Below, piece by piece: positions 831 through 63,869 of a stretch of 64,000 bases of DNA. Location: assembly GCF_006345805.1 (NCBI RefSeq), contig NW_021825821.1, positions 558,001 through 622,000 on the forward strand, given 5' to 3'. The number at the start of each line of letters is the position of its first letter. Position 1 is the stretch's first letter. The notes under the pieces were generated by a model. The model made no database searches, was not told the DNA's origin, and was given only the letters and a program-made list of their open reading frames with translations. Position numbers and translations under genes: made by a program. This DNA comes from Octopus sinensis (lineage: Eukaryota).

Positions 831-2616
831 ATTATTTTATGGAAACTTTTCATAAAAAAAATGATCAATCAATTAATCAATCAATATTCAGAAACAATGA
901 ATTTTTTAATAATCAATCATCAAATTTCCCTGTTTTATTCCATTTTCTAAATTTCTTTTAATTCTGTTAATGACGGTTGTTGATTCAACTTCTAAAGTTT
1001 TTTCCTGATAAAAATAATTTTGTTAATTTTCAAACTATAAGTCACTTCCATGGATTCAACTCATTCTGATTAGAAATATTTTGAAAAGAATTTGCAACTG
1101 GAACCAAAGATTCGTCAACTTCTTGTCTATCATCGTCGTCAAGGTTTTCTGTTAAAATATTATTTTTATTATAACAGTCGTCTAAAATTATTTTTTATTC
1201 ATAGATCTGAAATTCCGTGGAGCAATTTATTGAATACGTTCTAAACTCTTTATCTAAAACAATTATTTCAATTGGAATTCCCTTCCAATTTGAATGTAAC
1301 TAACAATTTTGGATTGTAACTTGACTAACCTTAAACCAAATGTGCACCGATAAACGCATTTTTTACAATTAACATTTATAAACATTAAATATTTTGACTT
1401 CCGATTTAATTTTATTCAAAATATTCTAAGACTTTTCATTCAAAAACGTGAGATTTAAAACTTTTAATCAAGCTTTCAAACATTAAATGCCTACAATATT
1501 CAGTCCACCGAACGATGGTAAATATAATGTGAATATACTATTTACGTCATTTTTTAAAAGGCAACTTTGCATTTTTTGACTTCTGCTGAAAATCATCTAC
1601 TTCTAAAATCAAACTATAATAAAGTCAGCCCTAATACGTTGTTTTCTGCTCGTCGATCACAGATTTATAAAATTTATTTGATTTAAGAGATGAGAACTGT
1701 TACTTTGTATGGATTCATATAGTCATATTATTAGTTTAAATAAATACCTTTAATTATTATTATTATTTTTTGTCACCGGCCGTAGGATAGACGGCGCCGT
1801 TGAGTGGACACTAAGCAATATTTTTAATTAAAAATATTTTTACAATAATAATCTCCATTAAAAAATCAAAATTATTTAAATAATTTATTACATATTCCTA
1901 ATTTTTGTTTAAATTAAGAATCGCGTGAGAATGGTTTTGTTGTATCTATTGCAATCCTTTGTTGAAAAATTAATTAATTATATTGAAACTGGCTTGATAG
2001 AAGATGAAACACAGAGGAAAGAACGTTTTAAAATACGTTCTCTCTCAAAAATTTTATTTATGAGCAATCTGTGCTTTTCATTCTGAAAAATGGTAAAAAA
2101 CTAAGATTCTTCACTATCGAACAAAATGAATTTAAGATGAAAACAATTGAGGTAAATATAAAATCAAATTTTGTAGGCTGAACACAATTTAAACCATTTT
2201 GGTCGTGATAGGCTTTATTCCAAACTCTGTGAAGAAATTTATCCGATTACGAGAAAAGAGGTCCTTACTGTTGTTAGCCGGTGTGAAGTTTGCCAGGTTT
2301 AATATTTATGAGCAATATAGGCGATGCGTTTGATGGCCACTAAACCAACTATTACTCCTATTATAGGAGATTCTGTTATTATCCGACATGACAGAGACTC
2401 AAATGTGAATAATAGGAAATATCATCTTCACGATGAAATATCTTCAGAGAAATTTTATATCGTTGACAAAAAAATAATTTATGTGTGTTAAAAGATGAAA
2501 ATGGAACAGAAATTGAATCCATTCACATTAGTAGACTCAAACGATTAGTTTAAATTTTTGGTTAATAAACTTTTAAAAATTGTATAAAAAGTTTTTCAAC
2601 TTAAAATAAGAAGCAA

Positions 2617-2792
2617 ACACACCGCGGCCGAAGGCCGCATAGGGGAATAGTTGGATTCCAAAAAAAATCCGGCCGTAGGCCAATTGGTTTAGGTTGGACT
2701 TTAAAAACTACACACCGCGGCCGAAGGCCGCATAGGGGAATAGTTGGATTCCAAAAAAAATCCGGCCGTAGGCCAATGGTTTAGGTTGGACT
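2617..2792. repeat. Two-copy 93-bp direct repeat containing GC-rich GNA-triloop hairpins
   Basis: ACACACCGCGGCCGAAGGCCGC...GGTTTAGGTTGGACT at 2617 and 2710. Confidence 0.9.
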
Positions 2793-2998
2793 TACTACCT
2801 GAAAGCCTAAGGCTGGATAAGAAGTAATACGTATGCAGCAATTAAGGTTTGGTTAGGGTTCCCTTAGAAATCTGTACTGGTCATCTCTAAAATGCTGTTA
2901 GGATACCAACGTCTATTTTATTTAATAATTTTACAAATAAATTCGATTTTATAACTATTAAAAAGTATTATTTTAAAATGATAAACCTCGAAATATAA

Positions 2999-3407
2999 GA
3001 ACTGGCCTACTGGGATTGAACTGGCCTATAAGAATCAACCAGGAATCGCTATACAATAGATGCAGAACTGGCCCTCTGAGTGTGGAAATCGTCAATATGC
3101 GGTGGAGGTTATTGGCCATATTCTACGAATGGACATGCTTGCCCCAGCTAACATAGCAATGGAGGGCTACTTCCTGAAAGAGGATCGAGCTTCCGTGGAC
3201 GTCCACGTGTTACGCTGCCGGAAACACTTGACGGAGACCTGAAATGTGTGAAGAAAAGGCTAAGGAGTGGTGAGGATCTGGACGAGCTGAGGAAACTCGC
3301 TCACGACAGAGGAGTTGGAGGAGGCTGGTTCAAAGGATTGTTTTTAATGCTGCACGAGTAAAATTATAACTAATATGATTCTACGTATGTTGCAAATAAT
3401 AATAATA
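2999..3407 (+). mobile_element. 5'-truncated RTE-like LINE 3' end nested in the Ginger-like element
   Basis: 18-bp TSD ATAAACCTCGAAATATAA (2981-2998, 3408-3425), (AAT)n tail, C-terminal GHILRM...LAHDRGVWRRLV motifs. Confidence 0.75.
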
Positions 3408-3654
3408 ATAAACCTCGAAATATAATAAACATTATGATTTTTAATCAATAATCGTAGAAAAACGGTGTGGTTGGTTTTGTTGGCTCTCTTATTTTCTCAA
3501 AAGTCACCAAATTCATCGAAAATAGGCTTAAAATGGGACTTGGAAAAAATTAAGGTATGTTTTATACGAGCAAAATTGAAATAAATGAGATTTTGAAAGT
3601 GTCCAACGAACGGCGCCGTCCAGCCTACGGCCGGTGACATTTTTTAACCCAAGA

Positions 3655-4275
3655 ATCACCAACAGTTAATTAGGGTAATTAATTAGGTGGTTCCAACAAT
3701 CCTCAAAATCTTTCTCAGCTTTTTCCGATGTTGGACTCTGGACCCAACGCAAGTGCGGGACGGGCGGGGAGCAGTTTTTGTGAGGAATTGGATTGGGGTG
3801 ATTTGCTTCTGATTGTTGAAGCCTTTTGGCAGGTGGTCTTGTTGGATGGCTAAGAAACCCTTTCCATCTTTCTTAATAAGTTGGTCAAGCGGAGTTGGGG
3901 TAATGTTGTTCACTTTGGAAATTTTCATTATGCTAGTTACGGCTCGGCATAGTGTAGTTTTAATTTTAAGGCGGTTAGACCATGAGAGATTAGAACCCCA
4001 AGCGGCGCAGGCATAGCCAATTGTTGGTTCGATGAATTGTTTGTAGAGAGTGCCGAGAGCCGGGAACGGTGTCTTTAGTCCACCAAAAATCGATTTGATT
4101 AGTCCAATCTTTCTCTAACTGGATCCGATGGCCTTCTCTAAATGGGCAGTAAAACACATGTGGGTGTCAAAAGTGACCCCCAGAATTTTAGGGTTCTTCG
4201 TGAATGGGATCTTTTCGTTGTCCAGAAAAAGATCAACAGTAAGGCTTCCAAGTCTCTTGTCCGACGTAAATAGGG
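3655..4275 (-). mobile_element. Jockey/CR1-like LINE 3' fragment, degenerate
   Basis: Reverse strand reads KILGVTFDTH..LYKQFIEPTIGYACAAW; same family as 15505-16080. Confidence 0.7.
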
Positions 4276-4385: not shown

Positions 4386-5928
4386 ATGATACTTTTCATT
4401 CTTGTGGCATCGCTATTTAGCATCGGAATTTACTTCAATTTGAGGAATCCGAATCTCTCTTCAATAAAACAAGACGAACCTCTGATCCTCACCGACTATT
4501 TGATTAAAGGAGAATCTGAACTGGCACGATCTCTGAGCCGCCTTAAATCTCCTCCTTTGAACATTGAAAGCTACTCGGGCTATTTCCGAGTATGCGACGA
4601 TTGCGTCAGAAATATGTTCTTCTGGTATTTCCCTGCCCAAGTAAACCGAACTCTCACTCCCTAAGAATGGAGACAGCTCAGCCCCAGTCTTGGCCTGGCT
4701 TCAGGGAGGACCCGGCGCCTCTTCTCTCTACGGCCTATTCGAGGAGCACGGCCCGTTCACCATCGACGAGAACTTGAAAGGCAATCGTGTGACATATATT
4801 TGCAGTGGTTCGACGCGATGTGACCTGGACGAGCAATTATTCCGTGATTTACATCGACAACCCTGTGAAACCCATAAATGACTCGTAGGTCGGGACTGGG
4901 TTTAGTTTTTCGAATGATGAATGTCTTTTAACCAACGAAAAGCAAGTCGGCCGATATCTCTCAATGTAGGTCACCTGCCCTATTTTAGATTTGCCCAACA
5001 ATTTTTTGAATTATTCCCCGAGTTGAGTTTAAATCCGTTTTATGTGGCGGGGGAGTCATATGCTGGGAAATATGTACCCGCGATGGTGAATGCCATTCAC
5101 AAAATGAACAAGAATTCCTCAGGTCGCATCAATCTTACAGGAATGATCATCGGGGACGGTTTGTGTGACCCTTACAACGTAATTTGTTATGGTCCCCATT
5201 TTTAGATGGTGGACTATGGGACGTACTTGTTCAATCTTGGTCTCATCTTTGATTCCCAAATCAGTCAGTTTGACGATTATAGAGATATGATCCGAGAGAG
5301 CATCGATCAGAATGACTACAAAAAAGCCTTTGAGGTTGGTCGTGAGTGGGAGTTGTAGTACTTTGACCAAGTTTTGAACGGGGACTTGACTCCCTACCCT
5401 ACTCTTCTCTTCAATCTGACTGGACTGACCAATTATTTCAACTACATGGCCGATGGAGTATTATTATTTATGATTAGACGTTAGCAAAAGCCAACATATT
5501 ACGAAAAATGGCTTTCCGAGAATGCACAAATGCTAAATGTGGGGAATCAAACGTTTAATGGTGGCAACCGTGTGGAGGTGGCATTGGTGGATGATATTAT
5601 GCGGTCTGTGGCTCCCTTGATCGAGGAAATCATCAATAATGGCTATAAATGTCTCTTCTTTAATGGACAACTCGACTTGATTGTTCCGTTTCCGCTGACC
5701 TCTGAATTTTTATTCAAGTTGGACTGGGAAGGGAAGGAGGACTTTCTGAATTCCGTCCAGCGGATTTGGTATTCGCGGGGCAATTCGAGAGAGGTGAATG
5801 GATATGTGCGGAGTTCTCGAAATGTGTACCAAGTTGTCGTCAGAGATGCAGGACATATGGTTCCCGCAGATCAACCCAAGGCGGCCCTGGACATGATTAA
5901 TGATTTCATTAACGACCAAGAGTTTTAA
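4386..5928 (+). CDS. CPVL: Serine carboxypeptidase S10 (CPVL / vitellogenic carboxypeptidase-like), 7 exons
   Basis: Signal peptide, [40 protein letters not shown]-like [21 protein letters not shown]; six introns of 23-27 nt (e.g. 4641-4665) restore one frame. Confidence 0.9.
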
Positions 5929-11293: not shown

Positions 11294-12039
11294 TCAAAGT
11301 TTTTCCTCAATTTTAATTTTACGGTTTCTTTTTTTAATTTGCTTCTTTTTCTTAGCTTCCGTCGACTTTTTCTTACAGGAAAGTGGATTAGCACCCTTAG
11401 CCAATTTTCTCTTCTTCTTCACCACCACAACCTCCACTTCCGGCTTCAATTTATCAATTTCCTTCACATCGTGACTCGTGGGGTCATACGACGCCTTGAC
11501 TACTCCCTCGGAAATGGCACGTGTATTGACAGAAGGACTCCTCAAGTTGATACAATTATGAGATATAACTAAAATCGGTAAAGTCCCCTTTTTTGACTGT
11601 TCCAAACATTCTGAGAGTGTTTTATCCTGATTATGGTCTCAACTTGGCTTACTTGAGTACATAAAAAATATTTATTTTGATTCTCGTCGCCAATCAGGGA
11701 CCTCAAACACGAGAAGGCTGACTTTGGAGATTCCGAATGCCCACAGGGGACCGTTTTGAATTGGGAGAGGACTTTGAAGGAACCGTAGAGGAGACTTCCG
11801 TATTTTTCACATTCTTTGAGACAACATTTGGTTGTTAGGAAACTTACTTCAGAATTGAGATATTTTGGAAGTTGTTCAGAGATGTTGAGCTTGCATCTGA
11901 GAATGTTAGGGGTAAAGTACCCGAGGGCAGCTCTGCAAAATGTACCGTCGATGAGGATGTTATAGGGAGGTTTGATTTGAAAATTTATATTGTAAAATTT
12001 CAAGAGTCTTTTGACTTTTTTCTGCCTTTTGAACCTCAT
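11294..12039 (-). CDS. UTP23: rRNA-processing protein UTP23 (PIN-like, Fcf1 family), 3 exons
   Basis: MRFKRQKK..PYNILIDGTFC..EQLPKYL..TTKCCLKE..CGH..YFLCTQD, lysine-rich tail with GANPLSCKKK; 24-nt and 26-nt introns. Confidence 0.88.
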
Positions 12040-14832: not shown

Positions 14833-15505
14833 CAGGGGTTCTCAACCTTTTTAGCTCAAGGGCCAAATCGATAATTAAGATTAGCTTCGCGGGCCGCATA
14901 AAAAATATTTTATATATTTTTATATTTTCCAAGCCGGTAACTCGCTTGCAATCCGAAGTGCAGCCACTGCTGATGCGTAATGAGTTTTTAGACTCTTTTT
15001 TCTTTTTTTAATTTCATTTCCTTTATAAATAAATACAAGCTAAAAAATCTACAAAAGGTGTTGTAACTAAAAATAAAGTATTATTTGTTTATTAAGTTTT
15101 TGAAATCCGGAATAAGTAAAGTCGAAGAAGTTTGTAAAAGCTGACTCAAATGATTATCCGTGAGTTTGTTACGATATTTATTTTTTATTCGAATCATTTT
15201 ACTAAATATTGATTCGCATAAATATGTAGATCCAAACATTGATATATTCATATATGCATTGTGTGTTATATTTTTGAATTTGTCTTGAGGAATTAATTCG
15301 TAAAAATTAATAATGGACGCATTTTTGAACAATGCCGCCAGTTCTATATCATGTTGTAAATTAATGAGTTCTAGTTGAAACTTTGCAGGCGCATCCTTAA
15401 TTTCCACGCTGAATGGAGTAGCGAATATTTTCATTAAAGGAAGGAATTCTTTAAAATTCTAAAAATTAAATTTATATAAATGTACCCCAAAACGTGCTTC
15501 AAATT
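14833..15505 (-). mobile_element. hAT (SPIN/GTF2IRD2-like) 3' half with one terminus
   Basis: TIR CAGGGGTTCTCAACC at 14833; dimerization domain SMFGSTYLCESIFSKM; 27-nt intron 15459-15485. Confidence 0.85.
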
Positions 15506-16080: not shown

Positions 16081-16670
16081 TAAATTAAATCACTAATTAT
16101 GGATATGTATTTTTCATAAGCAGCGCCTTCGTTGTTTTCAGATAGTGAATAAAAATGAGATGTATCTCGTCTTTAAGTGGAGTCATCCATAAATATAATT
16201 TTTCGATAAACGAAGAAATATATCCGGCGTGACTCACGTCTGGACTGTGACATGTAATAATAGGGAAAAACAAAAATAATTTACTTCATTCTTTTGTTTA
16301 GATTGGATAAATAAAACAAAATAGGCTCTCTGGAATCGTTCTTATCCTTGATATCCGTCGACCGAGCGAGCGGAGAAACCGGGGCGTACTATTTTTGTAT
16401 GGCTGGTTTTTTTAATTCGAATCTGAATTTTTCCAACTCTTTCATAAATATGAAATCATTGTCTGACATTTCTTTAGTTTTCAGGTAGGTTTCTAAAGGA
16501 AAAATCGCACCCAGCACATCCACAGTGTCATTAGAATATGAGCTTTTATTAACTGCTAAACATTAAAATTTTAAACAGGAAGAGGATTCTGTTTATAACT
16601 GGGGAACTGATCAGAAAAAAGACGTTTGACCACTGGGAAACCAGCTGGTTGTACCAAAGAATATCTATAG

Positions 16671-18866
16671 CAGAGGTTTCCAAGCTTTTTTTTACGCGCC
16701 TCCCTTAGAGAAAAAGTACAATCTTGCGCCTCCCTTTATATTCCATAATATAATACAATTATTATTTTATCAAAAACAATTTTTTAAAACAAAAAGTTAA
16801 TGAGATAATTTTTTTTCCATCTTGGCGCAAAGTTTTTCAAATCTTGGTGTCATCGCAGAGAGTGCTACTCTTAGCTCATTAGTCACTACTAAACGAGTTC
16901 GATATTTAGATTTAATTGCAGCTAGTGCAGAAAATCCAGTTTCGCATAAATATGAAGTAGCAAATGGCAACAAAACTTTTATTGCTTTATTCGACAAAAT
17001 TTCATATTCCGTTCTTACATTCAACCAAAAAGAAATTAGCGGTTCTCTCTCAAATTTTTGTTTCAATAATGTATCGCATGACAATTCTATCAATTTTTCT
17101 TTTTCAAAAGTTGTCAATGCAAATTGATTATCTTCTTCATCAATAAATGGATTCTGTATCCATTCGAACATTTTACAGTCGAGATCTTTAAAATAGTGAG
17201 CAAAATGCTTCAACAAACAATCCAAATGTTCAGCAAATATGTCTTTGTTTGCTTCAATGTTCACTATGGCGCAAAAGGTGTTTAAAAGTGGAAACATGTC
17301 ATAGATATTTTTTTGTATATTTGATTTCCATAATACCAATTTTTTCATAAATGCTTTTATTTTGTCCTTTTGAGAGAATAAATGTAGTTGTGGTCCCTGC
17401 ATTGATTTATTCAATATACTCAATTTCCCAAAAATGTCAACTAAATAGGCAAATTTGACAATAAAGTCATCATCCCTGAACAACTTTGCATCTTCAATAT
17501 CATTTTCATCAAGAAAATCTGCAACTTGATCTTTGAGTTCAAACACCCTTCTAATCACTTTTGCACGAGATAGCCAGCGTACCTCACAATAGTATAAAAG
17601 CGATGTATATTTTGAATCCATATCTTCACACAGCTTTGCAAAAAGCTTAGCTCTTAAAGGACTGTGTTTTATGTAGTTTATAACTTTTGTAATTTGCGCA
17701 AAAATATCGTTCAGTTCTGGACTCATATTCTTTGAGACAAGTGCTGATCTGTGCAGCATGCAGTGCGTCCAGATAATTTCTGGTGCTCTGTTTTTTACAA
17801 GAGCTTGAAGACCAGATTTATTTCCTGACATTGACTGTGCTCCGTCTGTACAAAGTCCAACACAATTGATCCATTCTATGTTATTTTCTTCAAAAAAAGT
17901 ATCAATTATATTAAAAATTTCATTGGCCGTGCTCCTTCCAGGAAATGGTTTGCAGAATAATAGATCTTCTATTATTGTACTTTCTTCAGCATATCTGACA
18001 TATGCAATTAAATGTGCATTTTTATTTATGTCAGCTCCCTCATCAACTTGTATAGCAAATTTACAGTTACGTAGTCGAGAAACCAACTGATCACAAAGAT
18101 CTTCAGATATGTCATCAATTCTTCTAGCGACTGTGTTATCAGCAAGCGGTATTTGCTGTAATTGTTTTGCATAGGATTCGCCAAACATTGCTTCAACCAT
18201 ATCGATAGCTGCTGGCAAAACTAGAGTTTCTCCGATATTGTGCGGTTTCTTGCATTTTGCAATCCTGTAAGAAACTTTGTACGATGCTAGTAAAGCATTT
18301 GAAGAGACAGAACAAGTTTTTTTAACGATTTCGTTTGGTTATCAAACTCTTCTAATTTTCTTTTAAAAAATTCTTCAGACTTATGGACATGTTCAGAATG
18401 CATCGTTTCAAAATGTCTTCTTAATTTGCATGGCCTCATACTATCTGCTGCAAGTGTTTTGAGGCAAAGCAAACAGAGGGGTTTTTCCATAGAATCAACA
18501 AAGATACGTGTGAATCCTAACAATAAGTAAGATGGAAAGTATTTTCTTGTCTTTGGAGTGGTATTGATTATATTCCAATCATTTTGATTTTTTGAACCAT
18601 CGTCAAAATCTTTATTATTCGTGAATTTTCTTTTGCAACCACTCAAGAATTTATTCATGTGTTAAAATTATTTAATTGTCTAATAAATTAAATAAATTTT
18701 TGAAAAAAATAATTTTTAAATTAATAACTCTTATTATCGGAATATAGTCACGTTTTTTACATAGATATAATTTTCTAAAAAATGTTTCTGAAATACTTTT
18801 CGCGCCTCCCTTGACACGAGTCAACGCCTCCCTAGGGAGGCGCGCCTCCCCATTTGGAAACCTCTG
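16671..18866 (-). mobile_element. Complete Buster-type hAT transposon (ZBED5/SCAND3-like transposase)
   Basis: TIR CAGAGGTTTCCAA at both ends; perfect 8-bp TSD ATCTATAG (16663-16670, 18867-18874); GCGCCTCCC subterminal repeats. Confidence 0.95.
16797..18658 (-). CDS. hAT Buster transposase, ~620 aa, one -1 frameshift in an A-run near 18325
   Basis: BED finger CLLC..HFETMH, QVDE, CTDGA, HCMLHR, VRWLSR, PFATSYLCETGFS; adding one A joins ORFs 18287-18658 and 16797-18218. Confidence 0.85.
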
Positions 18867-18899
18867 ATCTATAGCAATCTTGCAAGGTAACTTGTTTGT

Positions 18900-19480
18900 T
18901 ATTTGCGGTGCAGCCACCGGCGAATCCTAATTGTTTTCCCTTTCGATACTTTGAAATACATTCTTATTAATAAAAAAACTTTAAAATTGATTCAAAGACA
19001 ACTGCTGCGTTTTCAACCATGTTATTTATTTTATTTAGTTTGTATTTTGCAAAATGGGTTTTAAATGATCTTATAATTATTAAATCCATAGGTTGAAGAT
19101 TCCCTGTAGCATTATTAAACAAATAAATCAATTCAATGTTTTTGGGAGTATAAGCAGTTTGGTGACCAGGGAAGTTATCGATCAAAAAAATGATTTTCGT
19201 TTTTTTCTTTCTAGCTCGTAGTCTCAATCATAAAGCTAAAAACTAAAAATCTTGCTTATAGAAGCTCTGTAGTCACGATTGATTTTAGACTAAAAATTTG
19301 AAACAGTGAGGGCTTCAAACTTTCCAGCATAGCATGATTGAAAATATTTTTTGATAGTTTTATGGTATAGTTGTATTTTCTCTGCATAATGTTTTTGAGG
19401 GTGTAAGTTTAAAAAATAACCCCGTTTCATTCATATTGTAGACTTTTTGGGGCCATACAAGTTTATTTTCTTTTGGATTT
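18900..19480 (-). mobile_element. pogo/Tigger transposase relic
   Basis: VYNMNETGLFFK, FLIDNFPGH, LQPMDL.IIRSFK. Confidence 0.75.
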
Positions 19481-20223
19481 ATATTATTATAGCGTTTTGC
19501 AAGATGACAACGTAATGTTGACATCTCGCACTGGCCAGCCACATAAGATCAAGACAGAGAGAGAACATGTTATGAAGAAACTAATTAATCTAAATGAAGA
19601 GAATCCAAACGAAGACGTGTTTCTCTGCTCCATCTATTTTTTCTTTTGTGCTGTGGCTGAGATAGACATCCGGTTCCGCAGTGAAATCACTGATGACGGC
19701 GTTACTCGTCAATCCAGGGTGCATGTAATATGCATGGAAGCTTCGGCCGGAATGATAACTGTAAGATTTGAACCCGGGAGCTTCGCAAAACTGCCAAGTC
19801 CTTTAAGCTTTGGATTTCAAAATAAAAAAAGTAAAATCCTTCTTGTTCCCTGAAAATATTTCCCCGTATAATGTTTTTAATTTTATTTTATATTTCTTTT
19901 TTTAATTTTTAAAGCCACCCAATTATCAAATTTAAACTCTGAACATTTTTTTGATTCTTCTAATAATAAATTGTTCATCAAAATTTCCCCTTTGGTTTCC
20001 ATTTTTTCAATGTAATAGATCATGCTATCATTAATCAGTTCATATTTTAAATTTGGTTGTTTTTTATTTTTTGGGTTCAGTTTTGAAAAATCCGAAATTT
20101 TTTTAGTGTTTTTGAAAAATAACTGACACTTCTTGTCGCACTTCCTATTTTAAATTTTTAGAAAAAAATCAGCAATATAAGAGACCTGTTTTTATTACAT
20201 CGGTGATAAGCTATAATTTCATC

Positions 20224-22128
20224 ATTTCAGGTTTTAAGTGGTTCTTACCAATAGCAACGTGGAACTTACAAAAGAAAAATAGTGCATACCAAATGCAAAG
20301 TGAGTTTTACCTAAAGTGAAACTTATCAAAAGCAAAATGGTCTTACTAAAAGCAAATTGAAACTTACCAAAACCAAGTGGAAAAAAATTAACTTGTTATT
20401 TTAAAAAAAAGTAAAGCGCGAAAACAAATTGCTTTTTTCAGCCGCAAAATAGCAGAATAGCTTGTACGACTAAGCAAAAGTGACTAAACAACATTCAAAA
20501 GCGTCGAGATCAATTGTAAACGCGATTAAGGACAAACGTATATATTTGCATTTCTTCGCAAATATTTCATTTTCTCATTTGTACGCCTGCACAAATAAAA
20601 AAGCTTGAGGCTGCAATTAAAAAAAATTTTATTTTCAAAGCCGATGAAGGAAATTGTGACTGAAAGGAGCTTGCAAAATCTCCTGATGTTTTGCATACTA
20701 CTACTTATTGTTAGTTGGTGAACAATGATGAAAAAATTGATGAACTTGATCAGCGATGGGGATCAAAAGCAAAAAAAATTTCTTGATCAAAATAAAACTT
20801 ATTGTGTTGAACAGCTCGAAATTAACCCGAGAATCACTCTTGAGACCTTGAGAATTTTTTTAGATTCTAATTTTAGCTTAAATGTGTGAAAAAATCATTC
20901 AAGTCCACTTAGACGGTTCCTGTTATTCTTTTAAAAGATATCTGATATGAACCAGAGAAAGGTAATAGTCAATTAAATAAAGAAGACTGGGAGGGCGTCC
21001 TAAACTGCGTATGTTATTTTTGCGTATGCGTATGTTACTTGTATGTTATTTTTTTGTATGTTATTGACATCTGTTTTTTATTAAATAAAAAAACAATTTC
21101 ATTACTTTATTATTTATTGGAATATCAATCGGAGAAAATTCCGATACTATTTATGGATGAAAAAATTTTTGACATGCACATATCCTGTAAAAAGAGTCGT
21201 TCAAAAATGAACAAAGACTAATGTTGTTGAAACAAGTTTGCAAAATGCGAATTTACATTTCATTGGTTGTATTGGGTTTCTTTAATTGTTAAATTATGAA
21301 TTGAAACGTGGATCTTTTAATAAAGGATCTGCCCATGAATGGGTGAGAATTTGTCTACGAAAAGCCAGGGAAGCTTACAATTTTCCAATCGTGCTAGTAG
21401 TAGACAATTGTCTATGGAATTGAAAAAATTATAGATAATATCGGAATTTCCTCAGATTGACATTCTAATAAATAATGAAGTACTTCATCGGAAATAAAAT
21501 TTCAAGATTAGGTCCCTATAACCCTATGCTTAACCCAATTGAGAATATTTGGTCAGTATTCAAAGCTGATATAAAAAAACACATCGCAATAGACATTAAT
21601 AATAATTTGAATGGTTTGAGGCAAAAATCTTTGTCAACTACGGGATTTCGACTTCAAAAGTTAATAGAAAATATGATTAACTCATTATGTATAATCATTC
21701 CATCTCTATTCAACACCGCAATTGCTAGAATTTAGAGTTTGGCCTCATCGATGTTAAATAATTATGACGTAATTTATTAAATAGTTTTATTGTTCTACTT
21801 TGCTTTTGGTAAGTTCCACTTTGGTTTTCGGAAGACCCACTTTGGTTTTGGTAAGTTCCACTTTGGTTTTAGGAAGACCCACTTTGGTTTTGGTAAGTTC
21901 CACTTTGGTTTTAGGAAGACCCACTTTGGTTTTGGTAAGTTCCACTTTGCTTTTGGTAAGACCCACTTTGGTTTTGGTAAGAGCCACTTTGCTTTTGGTA
22001 AGAGGCAATTTGCTTTTGGTAAGTTCCACTTAGCTTTTGGTAAAATCCACTTTGCTTTTGATAAATTTCGCTTTGCTTTTGGTAAGACCCACTTTAGTTT
22101 TTGATAAGACTCACTTTAAACCTGAAAT
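20224..22128 (+). mobile_element. Tc1/IS630-like DNA transposon relic with long inverted ends built from 21-bp repeats
   Basis: ATTTCAGGTT..AAGTG at left matches the reverse complement of the right end; internal ILFMDE, VLVVDN, LGPYNPMLNPIENIWS. Confidence 0.7.
21790..22110. repeat. 21-bp minisatellite, ~15 copies (CCACTTTGGTTTTGGTAAG.. consensus)
   Basis: Directly visible tandem array; degenerate inverted copies at 20240-20380. Confidence 0.95.
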
Positions 22129-24800: not shown

Positions 24801-26758
<1,958 letters not shown>

Positions 26759-28483: not shown

Positions 28484-30731
28484 CAGGGGTTCTCAAGTGC
28501 GGCCCTCGGGGCCGCATGCGGCCCCGAGAATCTTTTTTGCGGCCCCGACTTCCAAACTTTAAAATAAATTTTGGATATAAAATTAATTGTAAATTAATAT
28601 TATTAAAGATAATATTTTAACTACACGTGTTTGTAAATATATTTCAGGTTGAGTATTTTTTCATGCCATCAAAGAAATATCGAACATTATCTCAAGAAAA
28701 TAGAGAATTTCAAATTGAATGGGAAGAAAAGTTTTTTTTCGTTGAACTGAATGGTAAAGCTGTTTGTTTGATATGCAACTGTGTCATTAATTCATTGAAA
28801 AATTATACTATTGAACGTCATTATAAGAAGCACTCCGAAATATACAATTTATATCTCGGAGAGTCAAGGAAAAAAAAACTCAATATATTAAAGACGTCAT
28901 TTAAAAATCAGTCCTCAATATTTAAACCAGTGGAAAATAAGCATCAGTTATTAACGTCTTATAAAATTAGCCACCTTCTTGCTGTAAATATGAAACCTTA
29001 TTCTGACGGAGAAATTATTAAAAACTGCTATTTCCATTTTTTGTGATGAATGTTGTCCGTCAAATATACAAAATATTGCAAAACGATTACCATTAAGTAA
29101 TGATACTATTACAAGAAGAATAGAATGTATTTTTGAGGACCTTGCCCGTCAGCTAATCAAGTTCTTTACTATTAAAAATAATTTTTATAGAACATCGAAA
29201 GATTTTTTATATCATTCTTTTGCTGTCGACACGAGTAAAAATATCTCTGATACCGAACAAATGGTCGTATGCATTAGAGGTGTCACTTCGGATTTTAAAA
29301 TTTCTGAAGAATTTTTTTCTCTTCGTTCATTAAAAGGCACTACAAAAGGAATGGATGTACTTAACGAATTCCTTGAAAGTATTAAAGAATTTGACATTGA
29401 TCCTTCCAAAATAATTTCCATATGTACTGATGGGGGGGCGAATATGATTGGTCGTAATAAAGGGTTTCATGGACTTTATTCAGAATGGAGACTTGAAAAA
29501 AATCTTGATCCTATATTTTGGCAACATTGTATCATTCATCAGGAGAATATAATCGCAAAGTCACTTAAAATGCAAAATGTAATAAGTACGGTGTTGTCCA
29601 TTGTGAATTGGATACGCGGTAAATCTCTCAATCACAGGAGATTTAAAAAAATGTTAGTGGAAATTGACACAGTGCATAATGATGTGCTTTACCATACCAC
29701 TGTTCGATGGTTGAGTCGTGCCGCGTGCCTCAAAAGGTATATTTGCTTGAATAGAAGTTAGATTTTATGAACTACTCCCTCAAATAAGAGAATTTGTTAA
29801 AGACCACAAATACCATGATTTGTTGAGCAGTAAAGAGTGGATTGCCGATTTAGCTTTTTGGGTAGATCTAACCTCTCATTTATCGTCGTTAAATTGTGAA
29901 TTACAGGGGAAATATAAATTTTGCCATCAACTCTATGGATCTATTGCTTCTTTTATATCAAAATTAAAACTTTGGAGGGATCAAATAATGCTCAAAGATA
30001 CAATTCATTTTACTTGTTTGAGTGAAAATAAAGCTAACGGTTCATTTGAAAAATATACTACCATTATCAGTCACCTTATTGTTGAATTTGAAAAACGTTC
30101 TAAGGTTTATTAAAATTTAGTTTATTTTAAGAATTTTGATGAAATTTTGCCATCAATGAAAATTTTTGCAGCACCATTCAATATAGATCCTAAGAATGCT
30201 CCGCCATCACTCCAATTAGAATTGATAGACTTCAATCAGATGTGCAATTTACCTCAGTGCAAAAGATTGAAAATTTAATGGAATTTTATAGTTCACTTCC
30301 CAAGAAGAAAATATCCGAATATACTCATAAATGCTTATAAATATGCTTCAATGTTCGGATCCACTTATTTATGTGAGTCAATTTTCAGTAAAATGATTCA
30401 CATAAAAAATAAATATCGAAATAAATTGACTGATAATCACTTATGCCAGCTTTTGCGATCTACATGTGCCTCCTATATTCCGTGTTATGACAAATTAGTT
30501 AACAATTAGTTAAAATAGCTAACAATTTTTCGTTTTAGTTAACAATTTTTCGTTTTAGTCATTTTCCTTTAATTAATTAAGACTAACTATCTCGGTTTCT
30601 GAATAAAAAATGAATCTAAAAAAAAATTAGTTAAAAGTTAATGAAAGTTTTAATTTAATTTATTCTGCGGCCCCGAAGACAATGGTTAATTATCGATTTG
30701 GCCCCGACGTTAAAAAACTTGAGAAACCCTG
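28484..30731 (+). mobile_element. Complete hAT (SPIN/GTF2IRD2-like) element
   Basis: TIR CAGGG(G/T)TTCTCAAG, perfect 8-bp TSD ATCTTAAT (28476-28483, 30732-30739), GCGGCCC subterminal motifs. Confidence 0.93.
28663..30509 (+). CDS. hAT transposase with three ultra-short introns and a few single-base frameshifts
   Basis: MPSKKYR..ENREFQIEW..CLIC; introns 29161-29190, 29737-29761, 30105-30131 restore QLIKTSKDF..AVDTS, CLKRFYEL, KRSKNFDE. Confidence 0.75.
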
Positions 30732-33060: not shown

Positions 33061-34973
33061 ATTAAACCAGGTAGTTTTATACATCTACATAAACTTATAG
33101 TTGTTTGATGAAACAGGCCCTCCGCAGGAGCTAGGTCGCGGTGAGCGAAGCGAGCTGCCGAGCTAGTCCAATATAATTCTGTAAATTTGTGATTGATTTT
33201 TATCAACTGGATCCAATATTCGTAGATTACTGATTATTTCATGATACAGTCAGACCCCATTTCGAGGCACGTGTTTACGCGATGAAAGAGTTAACACTGA
33301 AGACGATACTACAACATCAGAAAGACGTAAATTCTTTGACTACAAAGTATTTGAAATTTTCCAGAAACTCAAAGAACAAGATTAATTAATATTAAAGCCA
33401 ATCATTAAAAAAGGCTTCATTTCAAAGTTGTCTCTACCGATTTAAGGTCAGACATTAACTAAAATTTAAAGAAATATGCAACAAAGAGATTCCTGGGATT
33501 TATTCTACATGCCTATTATAAGTAATTTGCTCCGAAAATAATTGAACATGGAGGACGAAGTGTGTTCAATCGTGATAAAACATCACTTGATATAAAATAA
33601 CACCAAGAAAGTCGTTTGTTAAAATTGATAATAAACCATCTGGATAAAACAATTCAAAGAAAGAATTACAGTAGATATATGTTGCAATCACGAGGGTGAA
33701 AAACTTAAACCTTTGATTATTGGGAAAATATAATAAACCTCGATGTTTCAAGAATTGAAGATTTTTGTGTTTCATATTTTGGTTTTAAAAGTGTATGAAT
33801 GACTAGGAACATTTTTAAAAGCTGGTAATACAAGTTTAATGAGAAATTGGTTATTCAACAAAAAAATATTAATATTACTCAATAATCCAGGTATCATAAA
33901 ACTATTGAATGCTCCAATATCGAATTCTTTTTTTAAATACGACACCCATACCAGCGGTTCTCAACCTTTTTTAGACTGGGGACCACTTTTGCACTATAAA
34001 ATTTTGTGGGGACCACCTTAAATAAAATAAACATTTTTTGGTATTAGCGCACAATTTTGGCCTCGCCAGGGCCAGGTTTAGACATGTTCGAATATTTATT
34101 ATAAAAATAACATGAACATTATGAAAATAACAGAAATTTAATAGTAATTTAGTGAGATTTCTGATCTTGTTTGCTCAGAATAATTTTACTTATATCAGGC
34201 TCTATGTTCGACAAAGCTACTCGCATATCATCTTGTACCCGTAGTCTATTTCTATATTTTGTTTTTAGAAAAGTCAGACACGACATCGCCATTTCACAGT
34301 GATAAGTAGTGGGAATGCAAGTATTGATTCCAATGCAGTTTTACTCAAAATGGGGAATTCTTTCGCCATCTGACACCTAACAATAAAAAGTAATTATTAA
34401 TGAGAATACCAAAAATCTAATAATGAAGTACATTTGAAAATAATCTGAGCAGACTGATTACATTGAAGTTCAATCAAGCTCTGCTGAAAATTGAGTTCCT
34501 GATATTCTTTAAATGAGGTCAAGAAAGGTTGAACGATCCAGTTTGGAATTGTGTCTTCAACAGGAATTTTCTGGGTGTACAGACTCTTTGTGGCGCCTAA
34601 GTTGAGAAGGTTTCAGTGAATTGTTTCCCAAAATTTTATGGCAAATCATGCATTTTGCCTTTATTTCATATTTGGGGCAATGAATTTAGTGAATCCAAAT
34701 TGTACGTAAGAATCCGACCAAAGACGACGATTCTTGTTAACCATAACTAGAATGATAAACCACGCTAATCAAATCAGATTAATTTCAATGTTTTTGATTT
34801 ATACTTAATTGTACAATTAGTTTTAAATTTAATATATTGTTATTTTGCGAAAATTCCTGGGACCACTAAAAATTTTTGGGGACCACGATTGAAAACCGCT
34901 TGATTAATTTCAATGTTTTTGATTTATACTTAATTGTACAATTGTTTTAACTTTAATATATTTTTATTTTTCG

Positions 34974-42075: not shown

Positions 42076-42282
42076 TTTTTATTTTTCGAAAATTCCTGGG
42101 GACCACTAAAAATTTTCTGGGGACCACTAGTGGTCCCCGGGGACCACGGTTGAGAACCGCTGCCCTATACCCAGCCATTAGATATTGGGATCATACAAAT
42201 ATTCAAAAAAATATTACTTAATTGTTTTTAGTTGAAAGTGATCCTACAGAAAGTCTTTTAAAATTAAATCTCCGTAAGGTTG

Positions 42283-56384: not shown

Positions 56385-57384
56385 ATGTGGGCCGACGTTG
56401 TAATATCAAATGGATACTTTCTTGTGTCCTCACTCCTCGCCATAGTAATAGGGTCGAAGAAATCTGTTCAATCCCAATCGATAGAATGTGAAAATGTGAT
56501 TCTTAAAATATATTTTAATCAAGATTGACCTCAAGTCTGCAGTTAAGTTTCCATTTGTTGCGTCTCTTGGTCTAATGTCTATCTATTTCTTACTGAAAGT
56601 ACTCAACCATGCCTCAATAGTAGTACGTTCCCGCCTACATCATCAAAGAGGCCATGAAGTTGATGACCATAGTAATCTACTCTGTGGCCATTGGAAATTT
56701 CCTCAGGTACTCGTATCTTTGATTTTAGGCCATTTTTTACACGCTACACTACATGCAAAATAGCCCAAATTATGATTGTTTTTGGACTTTCTTTGTTTTT
56801 ACGTTATTTTGAGGTGCCTATTTTGGTCTGAATTTCCAGCATTGGATCACTGATAATTTAATAGCCCTTTCACTTGGGATAACTGCTATTCAACTACTCA
56901 GGGTCACTTCTACCGTGAATGGAGTGATCCTACTGACCGGGCTTCTCATTTATGATATTTTTTGGGTTTTTTATACCCCGGTTATGAAGACAGTGGCCAT
57001 TTCTTTAAATGCTCCAATAAAACGTGTCCGTTTTGTTTTATTTTAGTTATGGTTCCTCGAAATCTGTTTAGTTGTCCGACGGGAGAGGATTTTTCCTTCT
57101 CCATGCTTGGAATGGGGGATATTATTATTCCGGGGACATTTATAGCTTTTCTCTACCGATTTGATTGGAAAAATGGAATGAGGGTGTTTTTTCCTGCTGG
57201 ATTGGTTGGATATGGACTTGGATTGGTCACGGCAATGGGAGTCTCTAGTTTTACTAAAAACGCACAACCTGCACTGCTATATCTTACTCCCACGTGTCTG
57301 CTTTCGGCTTTTTTTGCTGCTTATTTCATGGAAAATTTCACTTATTTTTTTTGGTATAACGAAGAAGATTCTGCTGATGAATAA
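56385..57384 (+). CDS. HM13: Signal peptide peptidase (GxGD aspartyl protease), 6 exons
   Basis: HWITDN, LIYDIFWVF.TPVM, LNAPIKL..P, MLGMGDIIIPG, AQPALLYL; introns 23-28 nt. Confidence 0.85.
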
Positions 57385-58845: not shown

Positions 58846-60460
58846 TGCTATTTGTTGACGATCTAAAAATATTTGCTCTCAAACAAGACACTTTACTCAA
58901 AATGATGGAAGCTGTTAACGGATTTTTAAAATTGTTGGTTTGGAGATGAATTCAGAAAAATCAGCGTCTAATTTGGAATCGGAAGCAATGTTCTTAAGAA
59001 TAGAGTTATGGACTCTATCTTTGAGAATGTTAAGAAGAGGATAACTATGCTATCGAAACAAAACTCGACTCTGTGAATCTGTTTCGTGCTATAAATGAAT
59101 ATGCATTGTCACTATATAATTATTATATTGGGCTAATCAATATTGAACCTTCTGAATTTGATGATATTGGCAGACAAATACGGCAATTGCTTACGTCGCT
59201 CATATTACATCTCAAACCTGCAAATAAAGAGAGACTGTATTTAAACCGGAAGGCTCTTGAAAGAGGGCTTTCATCAGTTACTTTCAAAAGTGAACTAATG
59301 CTCTTCCAGTTCCTTACGAGTCTGGAAAATATGTCAACTATATGCTTACGGAGGGCGGGGATTCTGCGTGTAATTAAAATGAATAAATGGCATTTGGCTA
59401 TGATCGCAGGATTTCTATCCTCCAAATATGCCATTATTGATAAGAAGAGTATTACTATGGAGTCTCTAAAGTCCAGTCAGATACAATATTTACAAAAGAA
59501 AATTAGTTCGAAAGCACTACATTCTGTGCTTTTCAAATGTATGGATGAACCTAATGTTGATTTACCTGCATCCTCAGAATGGCTATCTAATGGAAATAAT
59601 GGACCACGAAGCGAAGCATTGTATTGTCTTTTGCAAGATCGAAACTTGTTCTTTGCATCCGCTGACTCATTATGCAATCATTGTAAGAAAAGCAAGAAAA
59701 CTGTTGACCACATGGCTACTCAGTGTGGTAAAATGCTTAACAGTGATTATCTCCGGAGACACAACGAAGTTGTGAAGTGTATCTTAACTTGTGCCGAATG
59801 TATGGACTCAAAAAAGCAAGAAGATTGAAGGGACATTCTGTTCAGTCAACGCTGTCGACGGGAAAAGTTGAAATCAGGGTTGATTCAACAATCCTCACCG
59901 AAACAAAAGTAGAATACAACAAGCCAGATATCTTTGTCCACGACAAAGTCAGAAACGAAATAAATCTAATTGAAGTGGGTATTACTTCACAGGATCGCTT
60001 CAAGCAAGTGGAGGTTGAAAAGTGTCACAAGTATGACCTATTGACAAGTGAGCTTTCGCTTCTGTATAGCTGTCAAGTAAAAATAATTCCTGTGGTTATG
60101 ACATGGGATGGAGTTGTCTCGAAATGCTTCAAAAATTATATGAAGAAAATATCTATTGAACCAGGAACGAGGACATAAATCCAATCCGTTGTACTGAAAA
60201 GAACGCTCGAGAGTATGATGATCGAACACAAGCATGGAATTAAGGTATCCGGTGAAGAATACGCTTCTGCTTCCAACCGGTATGTGGAGATGGCATGCAG
60301 AGATGAAGACGACCCAATGAATGCTAAAGAAGATGCAATAGTTGAATTAGATGTGGTAATGGGGAGTAAGAGGCAGCTGGAAGTAGGCTCTTCTTCCAAG
60401 AGAAGGAGAGTGGATATCAGAGAGCTGGAGTGAGATCTGCTTAGTTTCTGATTAACTATT
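58846..60460 (+). mobile_element. R4/Dong-like non-LTR 3' half, degenerate (second subfamily)
   Basis: NHLLFVDDLK, NLFRAINEYA, RHNEVV, YNKPDIFV, IEVGITSQD, EVEK..KYDLL. Confidence 0.88.
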
Positions 60461-60599
60461 AATTTATTATTGTTTTTAAAAGAAATTTTTTTATCTTAAA
60501 TTATTTTGAGTCTAGACGAGAAAAGAGTTAGTTACTAAAGCCAACTTCTCTATCATTTAAGAAATCAGCCGCTATTAGAAACAGTTATTACTTTTCAGA

Positions 60600-61440
60600 G
60601 GTAAATGTCGAAGGAAGGTCGAATATATGTATCGAATATGTATCGAATTACTTGTCAAGAAAGTTGACTCCTATATTTGCAAGAGAACCTAAAAATCGTT
60701 ATATTGCAGATTTTGTGGGATTAAGAAGGTATTCTAGTCTTAATGGCGATAATGGATGGCCATTTTTTCGAATAAATTCTAGTTGGTTGTTGTTATAGAC
60801 TCATTTTTAAAATCCTCAGCTGTAAAACCTGCCAAACGCAAATTCGAGGAGAAAATTACCAGAAAATTGAAAAATATTTTTTTGATAATTGCTTCCCCAT
60901 TTATCCTACAGACTGATGATGGGAAAGAATCTAAGAATAAATGTATGAAAATGATGTGCAATCATTTAAAAATCATACACAAAAGCTATAAAAAAAATTT
61001 TATCAAAAAATTGTTTATAAATATAACAAGGCAAAACATAAAACCATCAAGAGTCCACCATTTAACATTTTTATCGCTTTATAACGAAATCAACCGCAGG
61101 AAAATCAATCGAAAATAATTAAATCCGGTTATTTTTAAAACGAGGATGATTGTATAAATCAACAAACTGTATATAAAACCCATGTTCTCGCCGAAGAAAA
61201 ATTAAAAAGGAGGCGGGAAATGGGAATTTGATGAAGGTATAGCCGTAAGAGACAATGTGCTACTGAGACACGATATTTATGCAAATCCTAATAATCGTAA
61301 ATATCAATTGTATGATCAAATAGAACCAACGATATACCAAATGGTCGAAGTTAATAAAGATACATGCGTACTTTAAGATATGAATGACGATTTATTCAAA
61401 AATATACACAGAAGCCGTCTAAAAATGTGACTTTTAAAAA
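60600..61440 (+). mobile_element. Ginger-like integrase/transposase relic
   Basis: RYIADFV..VIDSF..ILQTDDGKE; C-terminal VRDNVLLRHD..IHRSRLK similar to 2380-2550. Confidence 0.6.
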
Positions 61441-61659
61441 ATTTTAAATGATAAAAATTCGTGAAGTTTTAATATTTGCTTTTAAATGAAAAACCAAAAA
61501 AATCTAGAATGTGATAAAATACGTCATTGATAGAGAAAAATTAGCAATTTTGCCGAATCTTGGTAAAATTCATTCAATCAAAAAATTAACAAAATAGAAT
61601 AAATTGGCTTAATTTACTATGTTTGTATTATATAAATTTTTGACCAGTTCAACAGAAAA

Positions 61660-61940
61660 GAGTTAAAATGCGCAGCGGATCGACTGGCAATTCCCGCGCA
61701 TGATGGCCAATGAGATCCTTTGAAAGAGTCTGATCGACTCGTTGGGATCTTTCGTGGCAACCACGAGCTTAGATCCAAGGCGGCGGAGAAACGATAGCGT
61801 CTGCGGGCCGATGACTCCAGAGGTTTCCACCGCGACTGCAGTGAATTGGTGATTCTTTGCCAGGACCCGGTACTTCTTCTGTTTTGTTAGTTCCGCCTGC
61901 TTTGCAACTGAGCCCGGTTCCGCAGCGGAGACAATTAGAT
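61660..61940 (-). mobile_element. CRE-like 3' fragment
   Basis: PGSVAKQAE..KKYRVL..AVAVETSGVIGP..LFQRISLAIMRGN. Confidence 0.8.
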
Positions 61941-62097
61941 TTACTATGTTGTTTTTAATTAATTATCAAATTATTTTTATTTGATTTTAATAATTTTTTA
62001 ATAGAGGATTATCAAACCCCTGACACATGTTATAAAACTTTATTATTAAAAAACATCTTTGATGAAGAAAAACCATGTTAGAACGAGGTGATTAATG

Positions 62098-62600
62098 TTA
62101 TTTTTTACTATTAGGTAAGTAATCAGAAGGTGGACGTATTGTGCTAAATGGATATACAAAATCATCGTTAGGGATTTTAAATTGTATTCTATCTGGCACA
62201 AACATTACATCAAAATTACGAACAAACTCTTCAGGGTATCTTTTCCTCATTCCATCAGTCATTGGGTTATTTTGAATTTTTGTATTTAAAAGTATTAAGA
62301 AAATTAATAATTTATCCATTTGATACCTTTTAGCAACAATAATCCTTTATCAATGCTCTATATAACAAAAACTTTTTGATTTAACCTTTTTATATTCGTT
62401 GCAGATTACTTAACAATATCCTAATCTATCCGATTATTATATTAGCACTTTTCCAACTATCCAACAATGATTATGAAGCAGTTTAGATTTTTCAAAGCAT
62501 CTTTGCCGGGAATCTGAATTTTTTCTTAAGATAAACTCAGTAAAATCTATAGTAGACAATAAACAATATATTTAAATTTCACTGTCCCGAACAACAAAGC
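62098..62600 (-). CDS. Possible multi-exon orphan gene, unresolved
   Basis: Open segments of coding-like composition separated by 23-28 nt GT..AG stretches; no recognisable domain. Confidence 0.25.
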
Positions 62601-62699
62601 TTGTACTTTTGTGTTGGATAGGACAAACTGTATAATCTTAATTTGTTAAATTTTATATTTAAAGTAGCACGCTTTTTTACACTTTTGTTTGATATCTAA

Positions 62700-63865
62700 G
62701 ATGTCTTCTCGCTCAAATAAGAAAAGTCGTCATTATCAAAACGAATATTGAAAATATGGCTTTATTCAAATTATTGAAGATACAAAATAGCCTTATTGTC
62801 TTATTTGTCAGTGTTCTTTTTCAAATGAGGCAATGAAACCATCACGATTAGAGGATCAGTTAAAACGCAAGCACCCGGATAAAATGTCAAAGCCGATTGA
62901 ATATTTTAAAACTTTAAAATACAATTTTGAAAATAAGAAAACGATCAAATCGCTATTCACAGAGGCAGTACATGATGTTTATTTAACATTTATTTATATG
63001 TTGTTGTGGGTGCGCAGATCGCTTCTTATAAAATTGCTGAAATTATTGCGAAAACTTCCAGTTCTCATACTATCGCAGAAAATGTAATAATTCCATCAGT
63101 GGAAGTAATAATATCGGATGTAATGCATCAAGATGCTTCTAAAATTATTAAAAGTCTACTACTACCTCTTAGCAATGATTCGATTTGTCGAAGAATTGAT
63201 GAAATGGGAGATAATGTAAAAAAAATTTTATTGACAAACTGAAGCGGAGTAAGTTTTTTTACAAAATGACGAAAGCGTCATTGTAGATAGTAAAGCTGTT
63301 TTAACGAGATTTGTGAGGTTATTTTCGAATTTTTAATAAAATTTAGGTATTTCGAGAATGAATGTGTATTAAATGAGGTTTTATTGTTTGTCGAATTATT
63401 GGAAACCCGTACAACTGGAATGCCAATATATTCCGTAGTAAAAGTGTTTTTTGAAACAAATTTTTATTTATTTATTTGTTAAAGACCAAAGACGGGTAAG
63501 CCAGTTAATTATAATAATCCCCGTGATCGCCGATCCAAACGAGGGAGATCCTAGTGAAAGGTTAGATCCTGCCCGCATGATCGGCCTGAGACGACGATAA
63601 CGAGAATTGGCCCCAGGATGAAAACTGCCTCCTTCGGAATCGAACTCACGACTGTCCAAATCCATTGTCCATAGCTTAGTTTTCAGCCAAGGGGGCATAT
63701 TATTTGAAAATTTGGTTTCCTGTGCGACTGATGGTGCTATGTCAATGGTTGGAAGATAGAAGAGATTTGTTTCTCTTCTTAAAAAAGATTATAAATGGGT
63801 CATTACGGTTCATTGTATTTTACATCGCCATTAACTGGTGTCGAAGATTTTATGTTATGATTTAC
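62700..63865 (+). mobile_element. Degenerate Buster-type hAT transposase relic
   Basis: MKPSRL..HPDK, IASYKIAE, LSNDSICRRID, FVR|YF (29-nt intron 63318-63346), CATDGA..MVG, HCILHR. Confidence 0.8.
63462..63696 (-). mobile_element. tRNA-derived SINE inserted in the hAT relic
   Basis: Minus strand begins GCCCCCTTGGCTGAAA (box A-like), has GAGTTCGATTCC (box B) about 50 nt later and ends in (TAAA)n; it splits FFETN from ILFENL. Confidence 0.65.
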
Positions 63866-63869
63866 ATCA

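Follow-up and report, generated by a model that had tools for sequence, protein, structure and literature searches.

Transposase genes interrupted by introns are known from the maize element Ac, medaka Tol2 and the Drosophila P element. Ginger1 elements, which are bounded by terminal inverted repeats (TIRs) of 40-270 bp starting with TGTNR and flanked by a 4-bp target-site duplication (TSD) of CCGG or CCGT/ACGG, encode a Gypsy-type integrase with an H2C2 finger, a DDE core, YPYY and GPY/F motifs and an OTU or Ulp1 C-terminal domain; their transposase genes have 0-4 introns, some of them ancient and common to GIN1/GIN2 (PMC2836005). As for size, ultra-short introns of the class discussed here have been reported among animals only in myxobolid myxozoans and in the dicyemid Dicyema japonicum, whose splice signals are reduced to 'GTa' and 'AG' (PMC13644364). 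This species lives in the renal sac of Octopus sinensis and has a LINE-rich genome (long interspersed elements) with 36.7% GC and 49% repeats (PMC6736024). A different link between introns and mobile DNA is provided by introners, mobile elements turning into introns of host genes (PMC12130899, PMC11282704). The present analysis concerns a stretch of 64,000 nucleotides (hereafter the window) from an assembly labelled Octopus sinensis (GCA_006345805.1, contig VCDQ01004311.1, approximately positions 558,001-622,000), in which the transposase genes of four hAT copies and of a Ginger-like element are interrupted by segments of 24-33 nt. These are, with good confidence, genuine spliceosomal introns in a genome whose own introns measure about 19-28 nt and which is most likely that of a dicyemid.

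Eight such segments were found, all beginning with GT and ending with AG, and each of them is an insertion relative to homologous proteins, whose removal leaves an alignment with no gap or with one of 1 aa at most. A first-pass annotation of the window had counted at least nine in four hAT copies, a Ginger-like element and a pogo relic; eight were recovered at exact coordinates, while the one in pogo was not reproduced. The hosts of these segments are unrelated, as had been stated there, since they comprise three hAT lineages and an integrase-type element bounded by TIRs. The hAT copies, five in all (c1-c5), were located by tblastn with the near-intact copy c2 as query, and Pfam searches on concatenated six-frame open reading frames (ORFs), too insensitive for decayed transposons, were abandoned. 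Membership of the hAT superfamily is seen in the 8-bp TSD of c3, the short TIRs of c2, c3 and c4 and the set of domains, the homologs carrying FAM200-ZBED5_RNase-like and DUF4371 (Pfam). The most informative copies are c3 and its relative c1:

28484..30731, + strand: hAT c3 (GTF2IRD2-like/Buster-type), full length, with ATG at 28663 and stop at 30509
29161..29190, + strand: c3 intron 1 (probable), 30 nt, GTTCTT..TATAG, in frame, stop-free, 13% GC
29737..29761, + strand: c3 intron 2 (predicted), 25 nt, GTATAT..GTTAG, phase 2
30105..30131, + strand: c3 intron 3 (predicted), 27 nt, GTTTAT..TTAAG, in frame, containing TAA
14830..15560, - strand: hAT c1, 5'-truncated, of a sister family of c3
15459..15485, - strand: c1 intron (predicted), 27 nt, GTACAT..TTTAG, at a position homologous to c3 intron 3

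The element c3 ends in 14-bp TIRs (CAGGGGTTCTCAAG / CTTGAGAAACCCTG) and is flanked by an 8-bp TSD (ATCTTAAT). The copy in the window has additional frameshifts at 29020, 30229 and 30304, and a sister copy, 99.5% identical over 2261 nt, occupies another insertion site on another contig (519 kb; L001:9814-12072); the further defects of the window copy, one of which looks like an in-frame stop, are indels private to it. In the sister copy, removal of both the 25- and the 27-nt segment is required for an intact ORF from the ATG, which has 587 codons, or 597 with the in-frame 30-nt segment left in place; all other combinations stop early. Unspliced c3 stops at 365 aa, inside the 25-nt segment, which is exactly where P0001, the protein of 365 aa annotated in the same assembly at L001, comes to its end. 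This shorter product keeps the N-terminal zinc finger and is missing the C-terminal half with the hAT dimerisation domain, whereas the spliced product matches both Dimer_Tnp_hAT and an N-terminal SPIN-DOC zinc finger (zf-C2H2_12) in Pfam. Moreover, the spliced c3 protein can be aligned to eight homologs with zero gaps at all three junctions, in agreement with the earlier claim that removal restores both frame and transposase alignment. At intron 1, the ten residues that the segment would encode are absent in 8/8 aligned homologs and QLIK|TSKDF joins without a gap; at introns 2 and 3 the same holds for CLKR|FYELLP and EFEKRSK|NFDEILP, respectively. Intron 2 is a clean insertion, because the outgroups share the nucleotides that flank it (AAAAG|ATT(C/T)TAT). 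As regards the 30-nt segment 29161-29190, its absence from the homologs makes it a probable intron; in a relic of the family (c6, L005:15060-15720) its first 4 nt are retained and a deletion follows.

The second hAT copy, c1, shares 62% of nucleotides and 54% of amino acids with c3 in the coding blocks compared (the protein over 255 aligned codons). Its intron lies at the same site as c3 intron 3 (FEARFG|NFKEFLP), has the same length and is identical to it at 18/27 nt; it ends with an in-frame TAG, and a second copy is present at L001:3712. In the c1 family the counterpart of the 25-nt intron of c3 is half-deleted. Over the same 255 codons the proportion of synonymous differences between the c1 and c3 exons is at saturation (pS 0.72) and that of nonsynonymous differences is lower (pN 0.30), with equal values on either side of the intron. 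The shared site and length, together with saturated pS and lower pN, indicate that the 27-nt intron is older than the split of c1 and c3 and was kept under purifying selection.

The remaining hAT copies are a third lineage, a decayed Buster-like element and an intronless one:

33951..34902, - strand: hAT c4, third hAT lineage, internally deleted, with TIRs AGCGGTT(C/T)TCAA(C/T)C
34377..34409, - strand: c4 intron (predicted), 33 nt, GTATTC..GTTAG, with two in-frame stops
62700..64000, + strand: hAT c5 (Buster/ZBED5-like), decayed, with several stops, continuing past the window end
63318..63346, + strand: c5 intron (predicted), 29 nt, GTTATT..TTTAG
16665..18874, - strand: hAT c2 (Buster-type), near intact, with TIRs, a 620-aa conceptual transposase and no intron

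Removal of the c4 intron yields LLDFW|CQMAKEFPIL, which is gap-free to the intronless c2 and shows a 2-aa gap to P0015. In c5 the removal restores the frame and gives TRFVR|YFENEC, gap-free to its closest homolog P0123 (GYVRYFDDHC), a metagenomic protein which is 58% identical and encoded by an uninterrupted ORF of 1782 nt. A further segment of c5, 62977-63017 (41 nt), also restores the frame, but an AG occurs in it only at its end and a deficit of 5 aa relative to P0123 is left, so that it is no more than a candidate intron. Between the FFETN and CATDGA motifs of the same copy there is a GC-richer insertion of about 200 nt (approximately 63470-63680), which may be a short interspersed repeat. 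The copy c2 serves as an internal control, since a stretch of 509 codons runs continuously across all the intron sites of c1, c3, c4 and c5. It matches Dimer_Tnp_hAT in Pfam, and an exact-sequence look-up found its ORF not to be on record. It has a single defect, a shift of the frame by one base in an A7 run (18310-18328), and a homopolymer error in sequencing could account for it; an intron was sought there, and none was compatible with the frames. Many frameshifts of the transposon copies lie in A-runs (29020; 18310-18328; about 19225 in the pogo relic), and both slippage and homopolymer errors of the assembly fit them. Solitary terminal repeats of the c4 type are found at 38489-38502 (- strand), 42148-42161 (- strand), 34831-34909 and L001:1-79, where they adjoin the two large LINE copies or lie at the start of L001; they suggest either a derivative resembling a miniature inverted-repeat transposable element or hAT ends split by LINE insertions.

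Outside the hAT superfamily, the predicted introns are found in an integrase-encoding element with a degraded relative:

1771..3639, + strand: Ginger-like element A, with 42-bp TIRs beginning TGTCACCGG (TGTCA), an integrase H2C2 finger and a C-terminal domain
2152..2176, + strand: element A intron 1 (predicted), 25 nt, GTAAAT..TGTAG, shifting the frame
2297..2320, + strand: element A intron 2 (predicted), 24 nt, GTTTAA..ATATAG, with three in-frame stops
60532..61373, + strand: Ginger-like relic B, of a related family, with integrase core and C-terminus and with deletions
60760..60782, + strand: intron-like segment of relic B, 20-23 nt, ending TTCTAG, with no 5' GT

Element A has lost the DDE core and contains nested repeats; a 93-nt tandem repeat in 1.9 copies (2617-2793) lies inside it. 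Its spliced product is recognised as Integrase_H2C2 by Pfam (28.4 bits), and the match spans the first junction, KTIE|AEHNLNHFGRDRLY, which is gap-free to P0249, P0250 and P0260 and includes the invariant H49 and H53. At the second junction, CEVCQ|AMRLMATKPTITPII, the alignment is gap-free to 13/13 integrase homologs (e.g., CAVCQVRRLMTTKPVITPIV), and the invariant H, H, C and C of the spliced peptide are aligned with those of the 13 integrases. In relic B the removal of the segment restores NGDNGW|LVVVIDSF, but the segment has no GT at its 5' end; one reading is that a 5' splice site was mutated in this dead copy. The DDE core of relic B is degraded and gives no Pfam match; the homolog P0122 has both rve and H2C2.

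As a reference for these lengths, 19 host introns from four genes were curated by reading the three frames against conserved protein patterns:

4641..5484, + strand: serine carboxypeptidase (Pfam Peptidase_S10), seven introns of 25, 19, 24, 23, 27, 24 and 27 nt
25591-26665, - strand: polo-like kinase (PLK), six introns of 25, 27, 24, 24, 23 and 21 nt
56496-57046: signal peptide peptidase, five introns of 28, 25, 22, 26 and 23 nt
11897-11920, - strand: UTP23, one intron of 24 nt

The host introns thus measure 19-28 nt (median 24), have a mean GC content of 36% and are all GT..AG, with weak further consensus in this sample (n=19). The 19-nt intron of the serine carboxypeptidase gene (4787-4805) is the sole solution that keeps a conserved exon in frame. 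Two of the host introns, the 27-nt one of PLK (26389-26415, - strand) and the 24-nt one of UTP23 (11897-11920, - strand), are in frame and stop-free, and their retention would add 9 and 8 residues, respectively, to the protein without truncation. A Gnomon gene model, P0121 ('serine--tRNA ligase, mitochondrial-like'; window 60218-63215 and L005:17101-17801), was rejected as a source of host introns because it contains 'introns' of 33 and 68 nt as well as chimeric exons. In fact, this model joins a LINE tail, the Ginger-like relic B, intergenic sequence, a hAT c5 exon and real SerRS exons by introns ranging from 33 nt to 4 kb, which indicates that standard gene predictors fail on this genome.

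Host introns of this size are also a clue to the origin of the DNA, which P0121 and its locus assign to contig VCDQ01004311.1 of the octopus assembly. The window is AT-rich (36.1% GC) and contains host genes, LINE-type reverse-transcriptase ORFs and the remains of DNA transposons. Because introns of 19-28 nt occur here together with a GC content and a richness in LINEs like those of D. japonicum, and because the octopus is the host of that parasite, the contig and the second one of 519 kb (L001) are probably dicyemid DNA, e.g., of Dicyema, contaminating the octopus assembly. The proteins P0001 and P0121, labelled Octopus sinensis in nr, would then probably derive from the same contamination.

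It could be supposed that the segments are nothing but random small insertions in decaying pseudogenes and that their GT..AG ends are an artefact of the search. Most copies in the window are indeed dead, with other frameshifts of which several lie in A-runs, and pairs of GT and AG at a spacing of 19-33 nt abound in intronless ORFs, with 55-119 in each, for which reason the evidence consists of exact insertion and ORF restoration. However, only 0.26% of the 23-33-nt windows in this sequence are GT..AG, so that the figure of 7/7 independent insertions with these ends (about 1e-13 even with five alternative placements each) is far beyond chance. Within these coding regions, all insertions of at least 15 nt relative to the homologs are bounded exactly by GT and AG, except for one obvious repeat insertion and the segment 62977-63017 of c5. 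Furthermore, the c3 sister copy is fully intact after removal, and two anciently diverged families under purifying selection share the same site and length; random insertion is therefore very improbable. Still harder to credit is the removal of the segments from the DNA, like the eliminated sequences of ciliates, rather than by RNA splicing. Dicyemids have been reported to form developmentally regulated extrachromosomal circular DNA, but the segments have GT..AG bounds, show no TA-type or repeat boundaries and are in the length class of the host spliceosomal introns, which for their part lie where conserved proteins lead one to expect them. A few facts nevertheless weigh against taking all eight segments as introns. 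The first-pass annotation had their lengths match the host peak, and this is roughly true: the ranges overlap, but the transposon introns (24-33 nt, median 27) are longer than those of the host sample (Mann-Whitney p=0.019), 3/7 independent ones exceed the longest curated host intron, and they are far more AT-rich (17% against 36% GC), in keeping with the base composition of the elements that contain them. The protein collection searched yielded no spliced product, be it transcript or protein, for any of these families. Since most copies in the window are dead, alignment is the sole basis on which the segments of c4, c5 and the Ginger-like element are read as introns, and transposase could have come in trans from other copies. 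In addition, c3 intron 1 can be read through, as the annotated protein P0001 does; being in frame and free of stops, it may instead be a coding insertion of 10 aa. Finally, the outgroup sample is composed of ORFs that gene callers can find and is biased toward intronless relatives.

The nearest relatives of c3, with proteins 51-53% identical (two ENA assemblies and the tunicate Clavelina) or, in Hydra, 39% identical, are encoded by uninterrupted genomic ORFs (L002/L003, 1806 nt = 601 aa; L004, 1800 nt = 599 aa; 1461 nt = 486 aa in Clavelina; 1809 nt = 602 aa in Hydra), as is the relative of c5 (L009, 1782 nt = 593 aa). The alignment of spliced transposases to their nearest homologs, a check proposed by the first-pass annotation, thus supports lineage-specific sites, and gain rather than inheritance, in two hAT lineages, those of c3 and c5. 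It is unlikely, by comparison, that the introns are ancestral, started out at ordinary length and were shortened along with those of the host, the intronless relatives having lost them. Ginger1 offers a precedent, as its 0-4 introns include ancient ones present in GIN1/GIN2 too (PMC2836005), and inheritance is possible for the Ginger-like introns on the same ground. The 27-nt hAT intron does predate a synonymously saturated split, and intron-bearing relatives are under-represented among the ORF-called proteins that homolog searches return. Against this, five outgroup loci, which come from at least four genomes or assemblies, show no interruption at any position tested for the two hAT lineages, 13 integrase homologs are continuous across both Ginger-like positions and, because DNA transposons move without an RNA intermediate, a precise loss would have to be repeated in every outgroup. 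A somewhat better chance, albeit a small one, may be given to the functional idea of the first-pass annotation that the introns are real and form a layer of regulation, which would add to the reading of the segments as introns without replacing it. In one version, by analogy with IVS3 of the P element, retention would lead to repressor-like truncated proteins; in the other, a spliced transcript would be recognised as 'self' and thereby be spared silencing, nonsense-mediated decay (NMD) or failure of export. The unspliced 365-aa protein of c3, with zinc finger and without dimerisation domain, would suit a repressor; c3 intron 1, in frame and stop-free, would give two isoforms depending on its retention; and one intron was kept for long in exons under purifying selection. 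Yet hAT c2 and a Tc1-like ORF on L001, which look equally recent, are intronless, so that introns are not needed for persistence, and the data are accounted for just as well by simple neutral gain in a genome whose spliceosome removes any short GT..AG insert.

If the segments are spliceosomal introns, the host spliceosome would read little beyond GT...AG at a fixed short spacing, and splicing would be needed for a full-length transposase, with c3 predicted to make 587 aa when spliced and 365 aa when not. The introns would have been gained in at least two hAT lineages after their split from intronless relatives, in the form of clean insertions, rich in AT and placed for the most part at AG|R, and at least one would have been kept for long in functional genes. 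The earlier proposal that this genome inserts or shrinks introns into its resident transposons holds as far as gain in two hAT lineages is concerned, although insertion at short size and later shrinkage cannot be told apart. Gain is not universal among resident DNA transposons, because both hAT c2 and the intact Tc1-like ORF of L001 (351 aa) have no introns. On a general reading of ORFs, those of the LINEs are continuous, in agreement with the statement that retroelements are free of such introns. Concerning the mode of gain, Rogers' model derives new introns from the tandem duplication of an exon segment containing AGGT. The c5 intron resembles this scheme in its AG|GT exon junction and in a weak likeness to its flanks, and may have been caught close to its origin, whereas the junctions of the other introns are not AGGT. 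When an origin by tandem duplication was tested on all eight introns, only c5 reached a nominal p=0.043, which fails correction for eight tests. An introner-like spread was also looked for: with up to 4 mismatches allowed, the window, L001 and the L005 extension (about 98 kb) gave no further copies except in orthologous transposon copies. As a tentative proposal, wherever the spliceosome accepts almost any GT...AG insert of about 20-33 nt, micro-insertion or micro-duplication at AG|R may readily create new introns, and multi-copy transposon families would keep a datable record of such births.

Two further DNA transposons of the window were read for introns. In the pogo relic (18970..19548, - strand; Pfam DDE_1) all frames were read and their changes fall in A-runs; among GT..AG segments of 17-33 nt, none leads to a plausible alignment with DDE_1. 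In a Tc1-like relic (21117-21759) there is an excess of about 11 aa with stops (21391-21500) relative to the intact Tc1-like ORF of L001; a 27-nt GT..AG segment located there misfits the frames, as do all other GT..AG solutions. Other features of the window are a 95-96-nt satellite with about 12.5 copies just downstream of hAT c3 (30817-32006), a tandem array with a 21/42-nt unit (21797-22117), a 102-nt repeat in 2 copies (32216-32418) and an ORF (32597-32893) that looks, to the eye, like the C-terminal region of a Helitron/PIF1-type helicase. Scanning the window with Rfam and for tRNAs gave no matches.

Animals are considered to gain introns only rarely, and the way in which they do so has seldom been observed; the present sequences appear to record at least four or five independent gains, in the shortest class of animal introns. 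The intronless sister lineages permit a comparison base by base, and the multi-copy families permit dating through the divergence of copies. Transposons that enter or inhabit a genome of ultra-short introns seem to acquire introns in the host format, which bears on how strictly the spliceosome measures length. If gain by micro-insertion is as easy as proposed, dicyemid transposons, for which literature searches returned no report of introns, would offer a natural setting in which to observe de novo intron gain in an animal and could show whether acquiring introns helps a transposon to escape the silencing of unspliced transcripts. There is a practical side as well, as contigs labelled Octopus sinensis and the RefSeq proteins derived from them appear to be dicyemid, and gene predictors read into their introns or build chimeras.

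With Ac, Tol2 and the P element the transposons of the window would share the production of transposase only after host GT-AG splicing and, as predicted, truncated proteins from retained introns; they differ in the length of the introns, which at 24-33 nt are about the shortest class in animals, and in that these lie in Buster/GTF2IRD2-type hATs with single-exon relatives as apparent lineage-specific gains. With Ginger1, element A has in common the TIR boundaries, the H2C2 finger of a Gypsy-type integrase, TGTNR termini and GT-AG introns in the transposase gene, but it lacks the DDE core and is flanked by TTTTT|...|TTTTTT instead of a CCGG-type TSD; a 4-bp duplication of TTTT may exist, though it tells little, and the AT-rich target is nearer to Ginger2 (PMC2836005). 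Introners represent, like the segments described here, a route to recent intron gain (PMC12130899, PMC11282704), whereas the introns of the window are inside transposon genes, are far too short to be elements and have no extra copies. Lastly, the host introns of the window fit those of dicyemids and myxobolids in being shorter than about 30 nt with GT(a) and AG as signals (PMC13644364; PMC6736024); those introns, however, belong to host genes and are largely inherited in position and shrunken, while the introns of the transposons would be new insertions.

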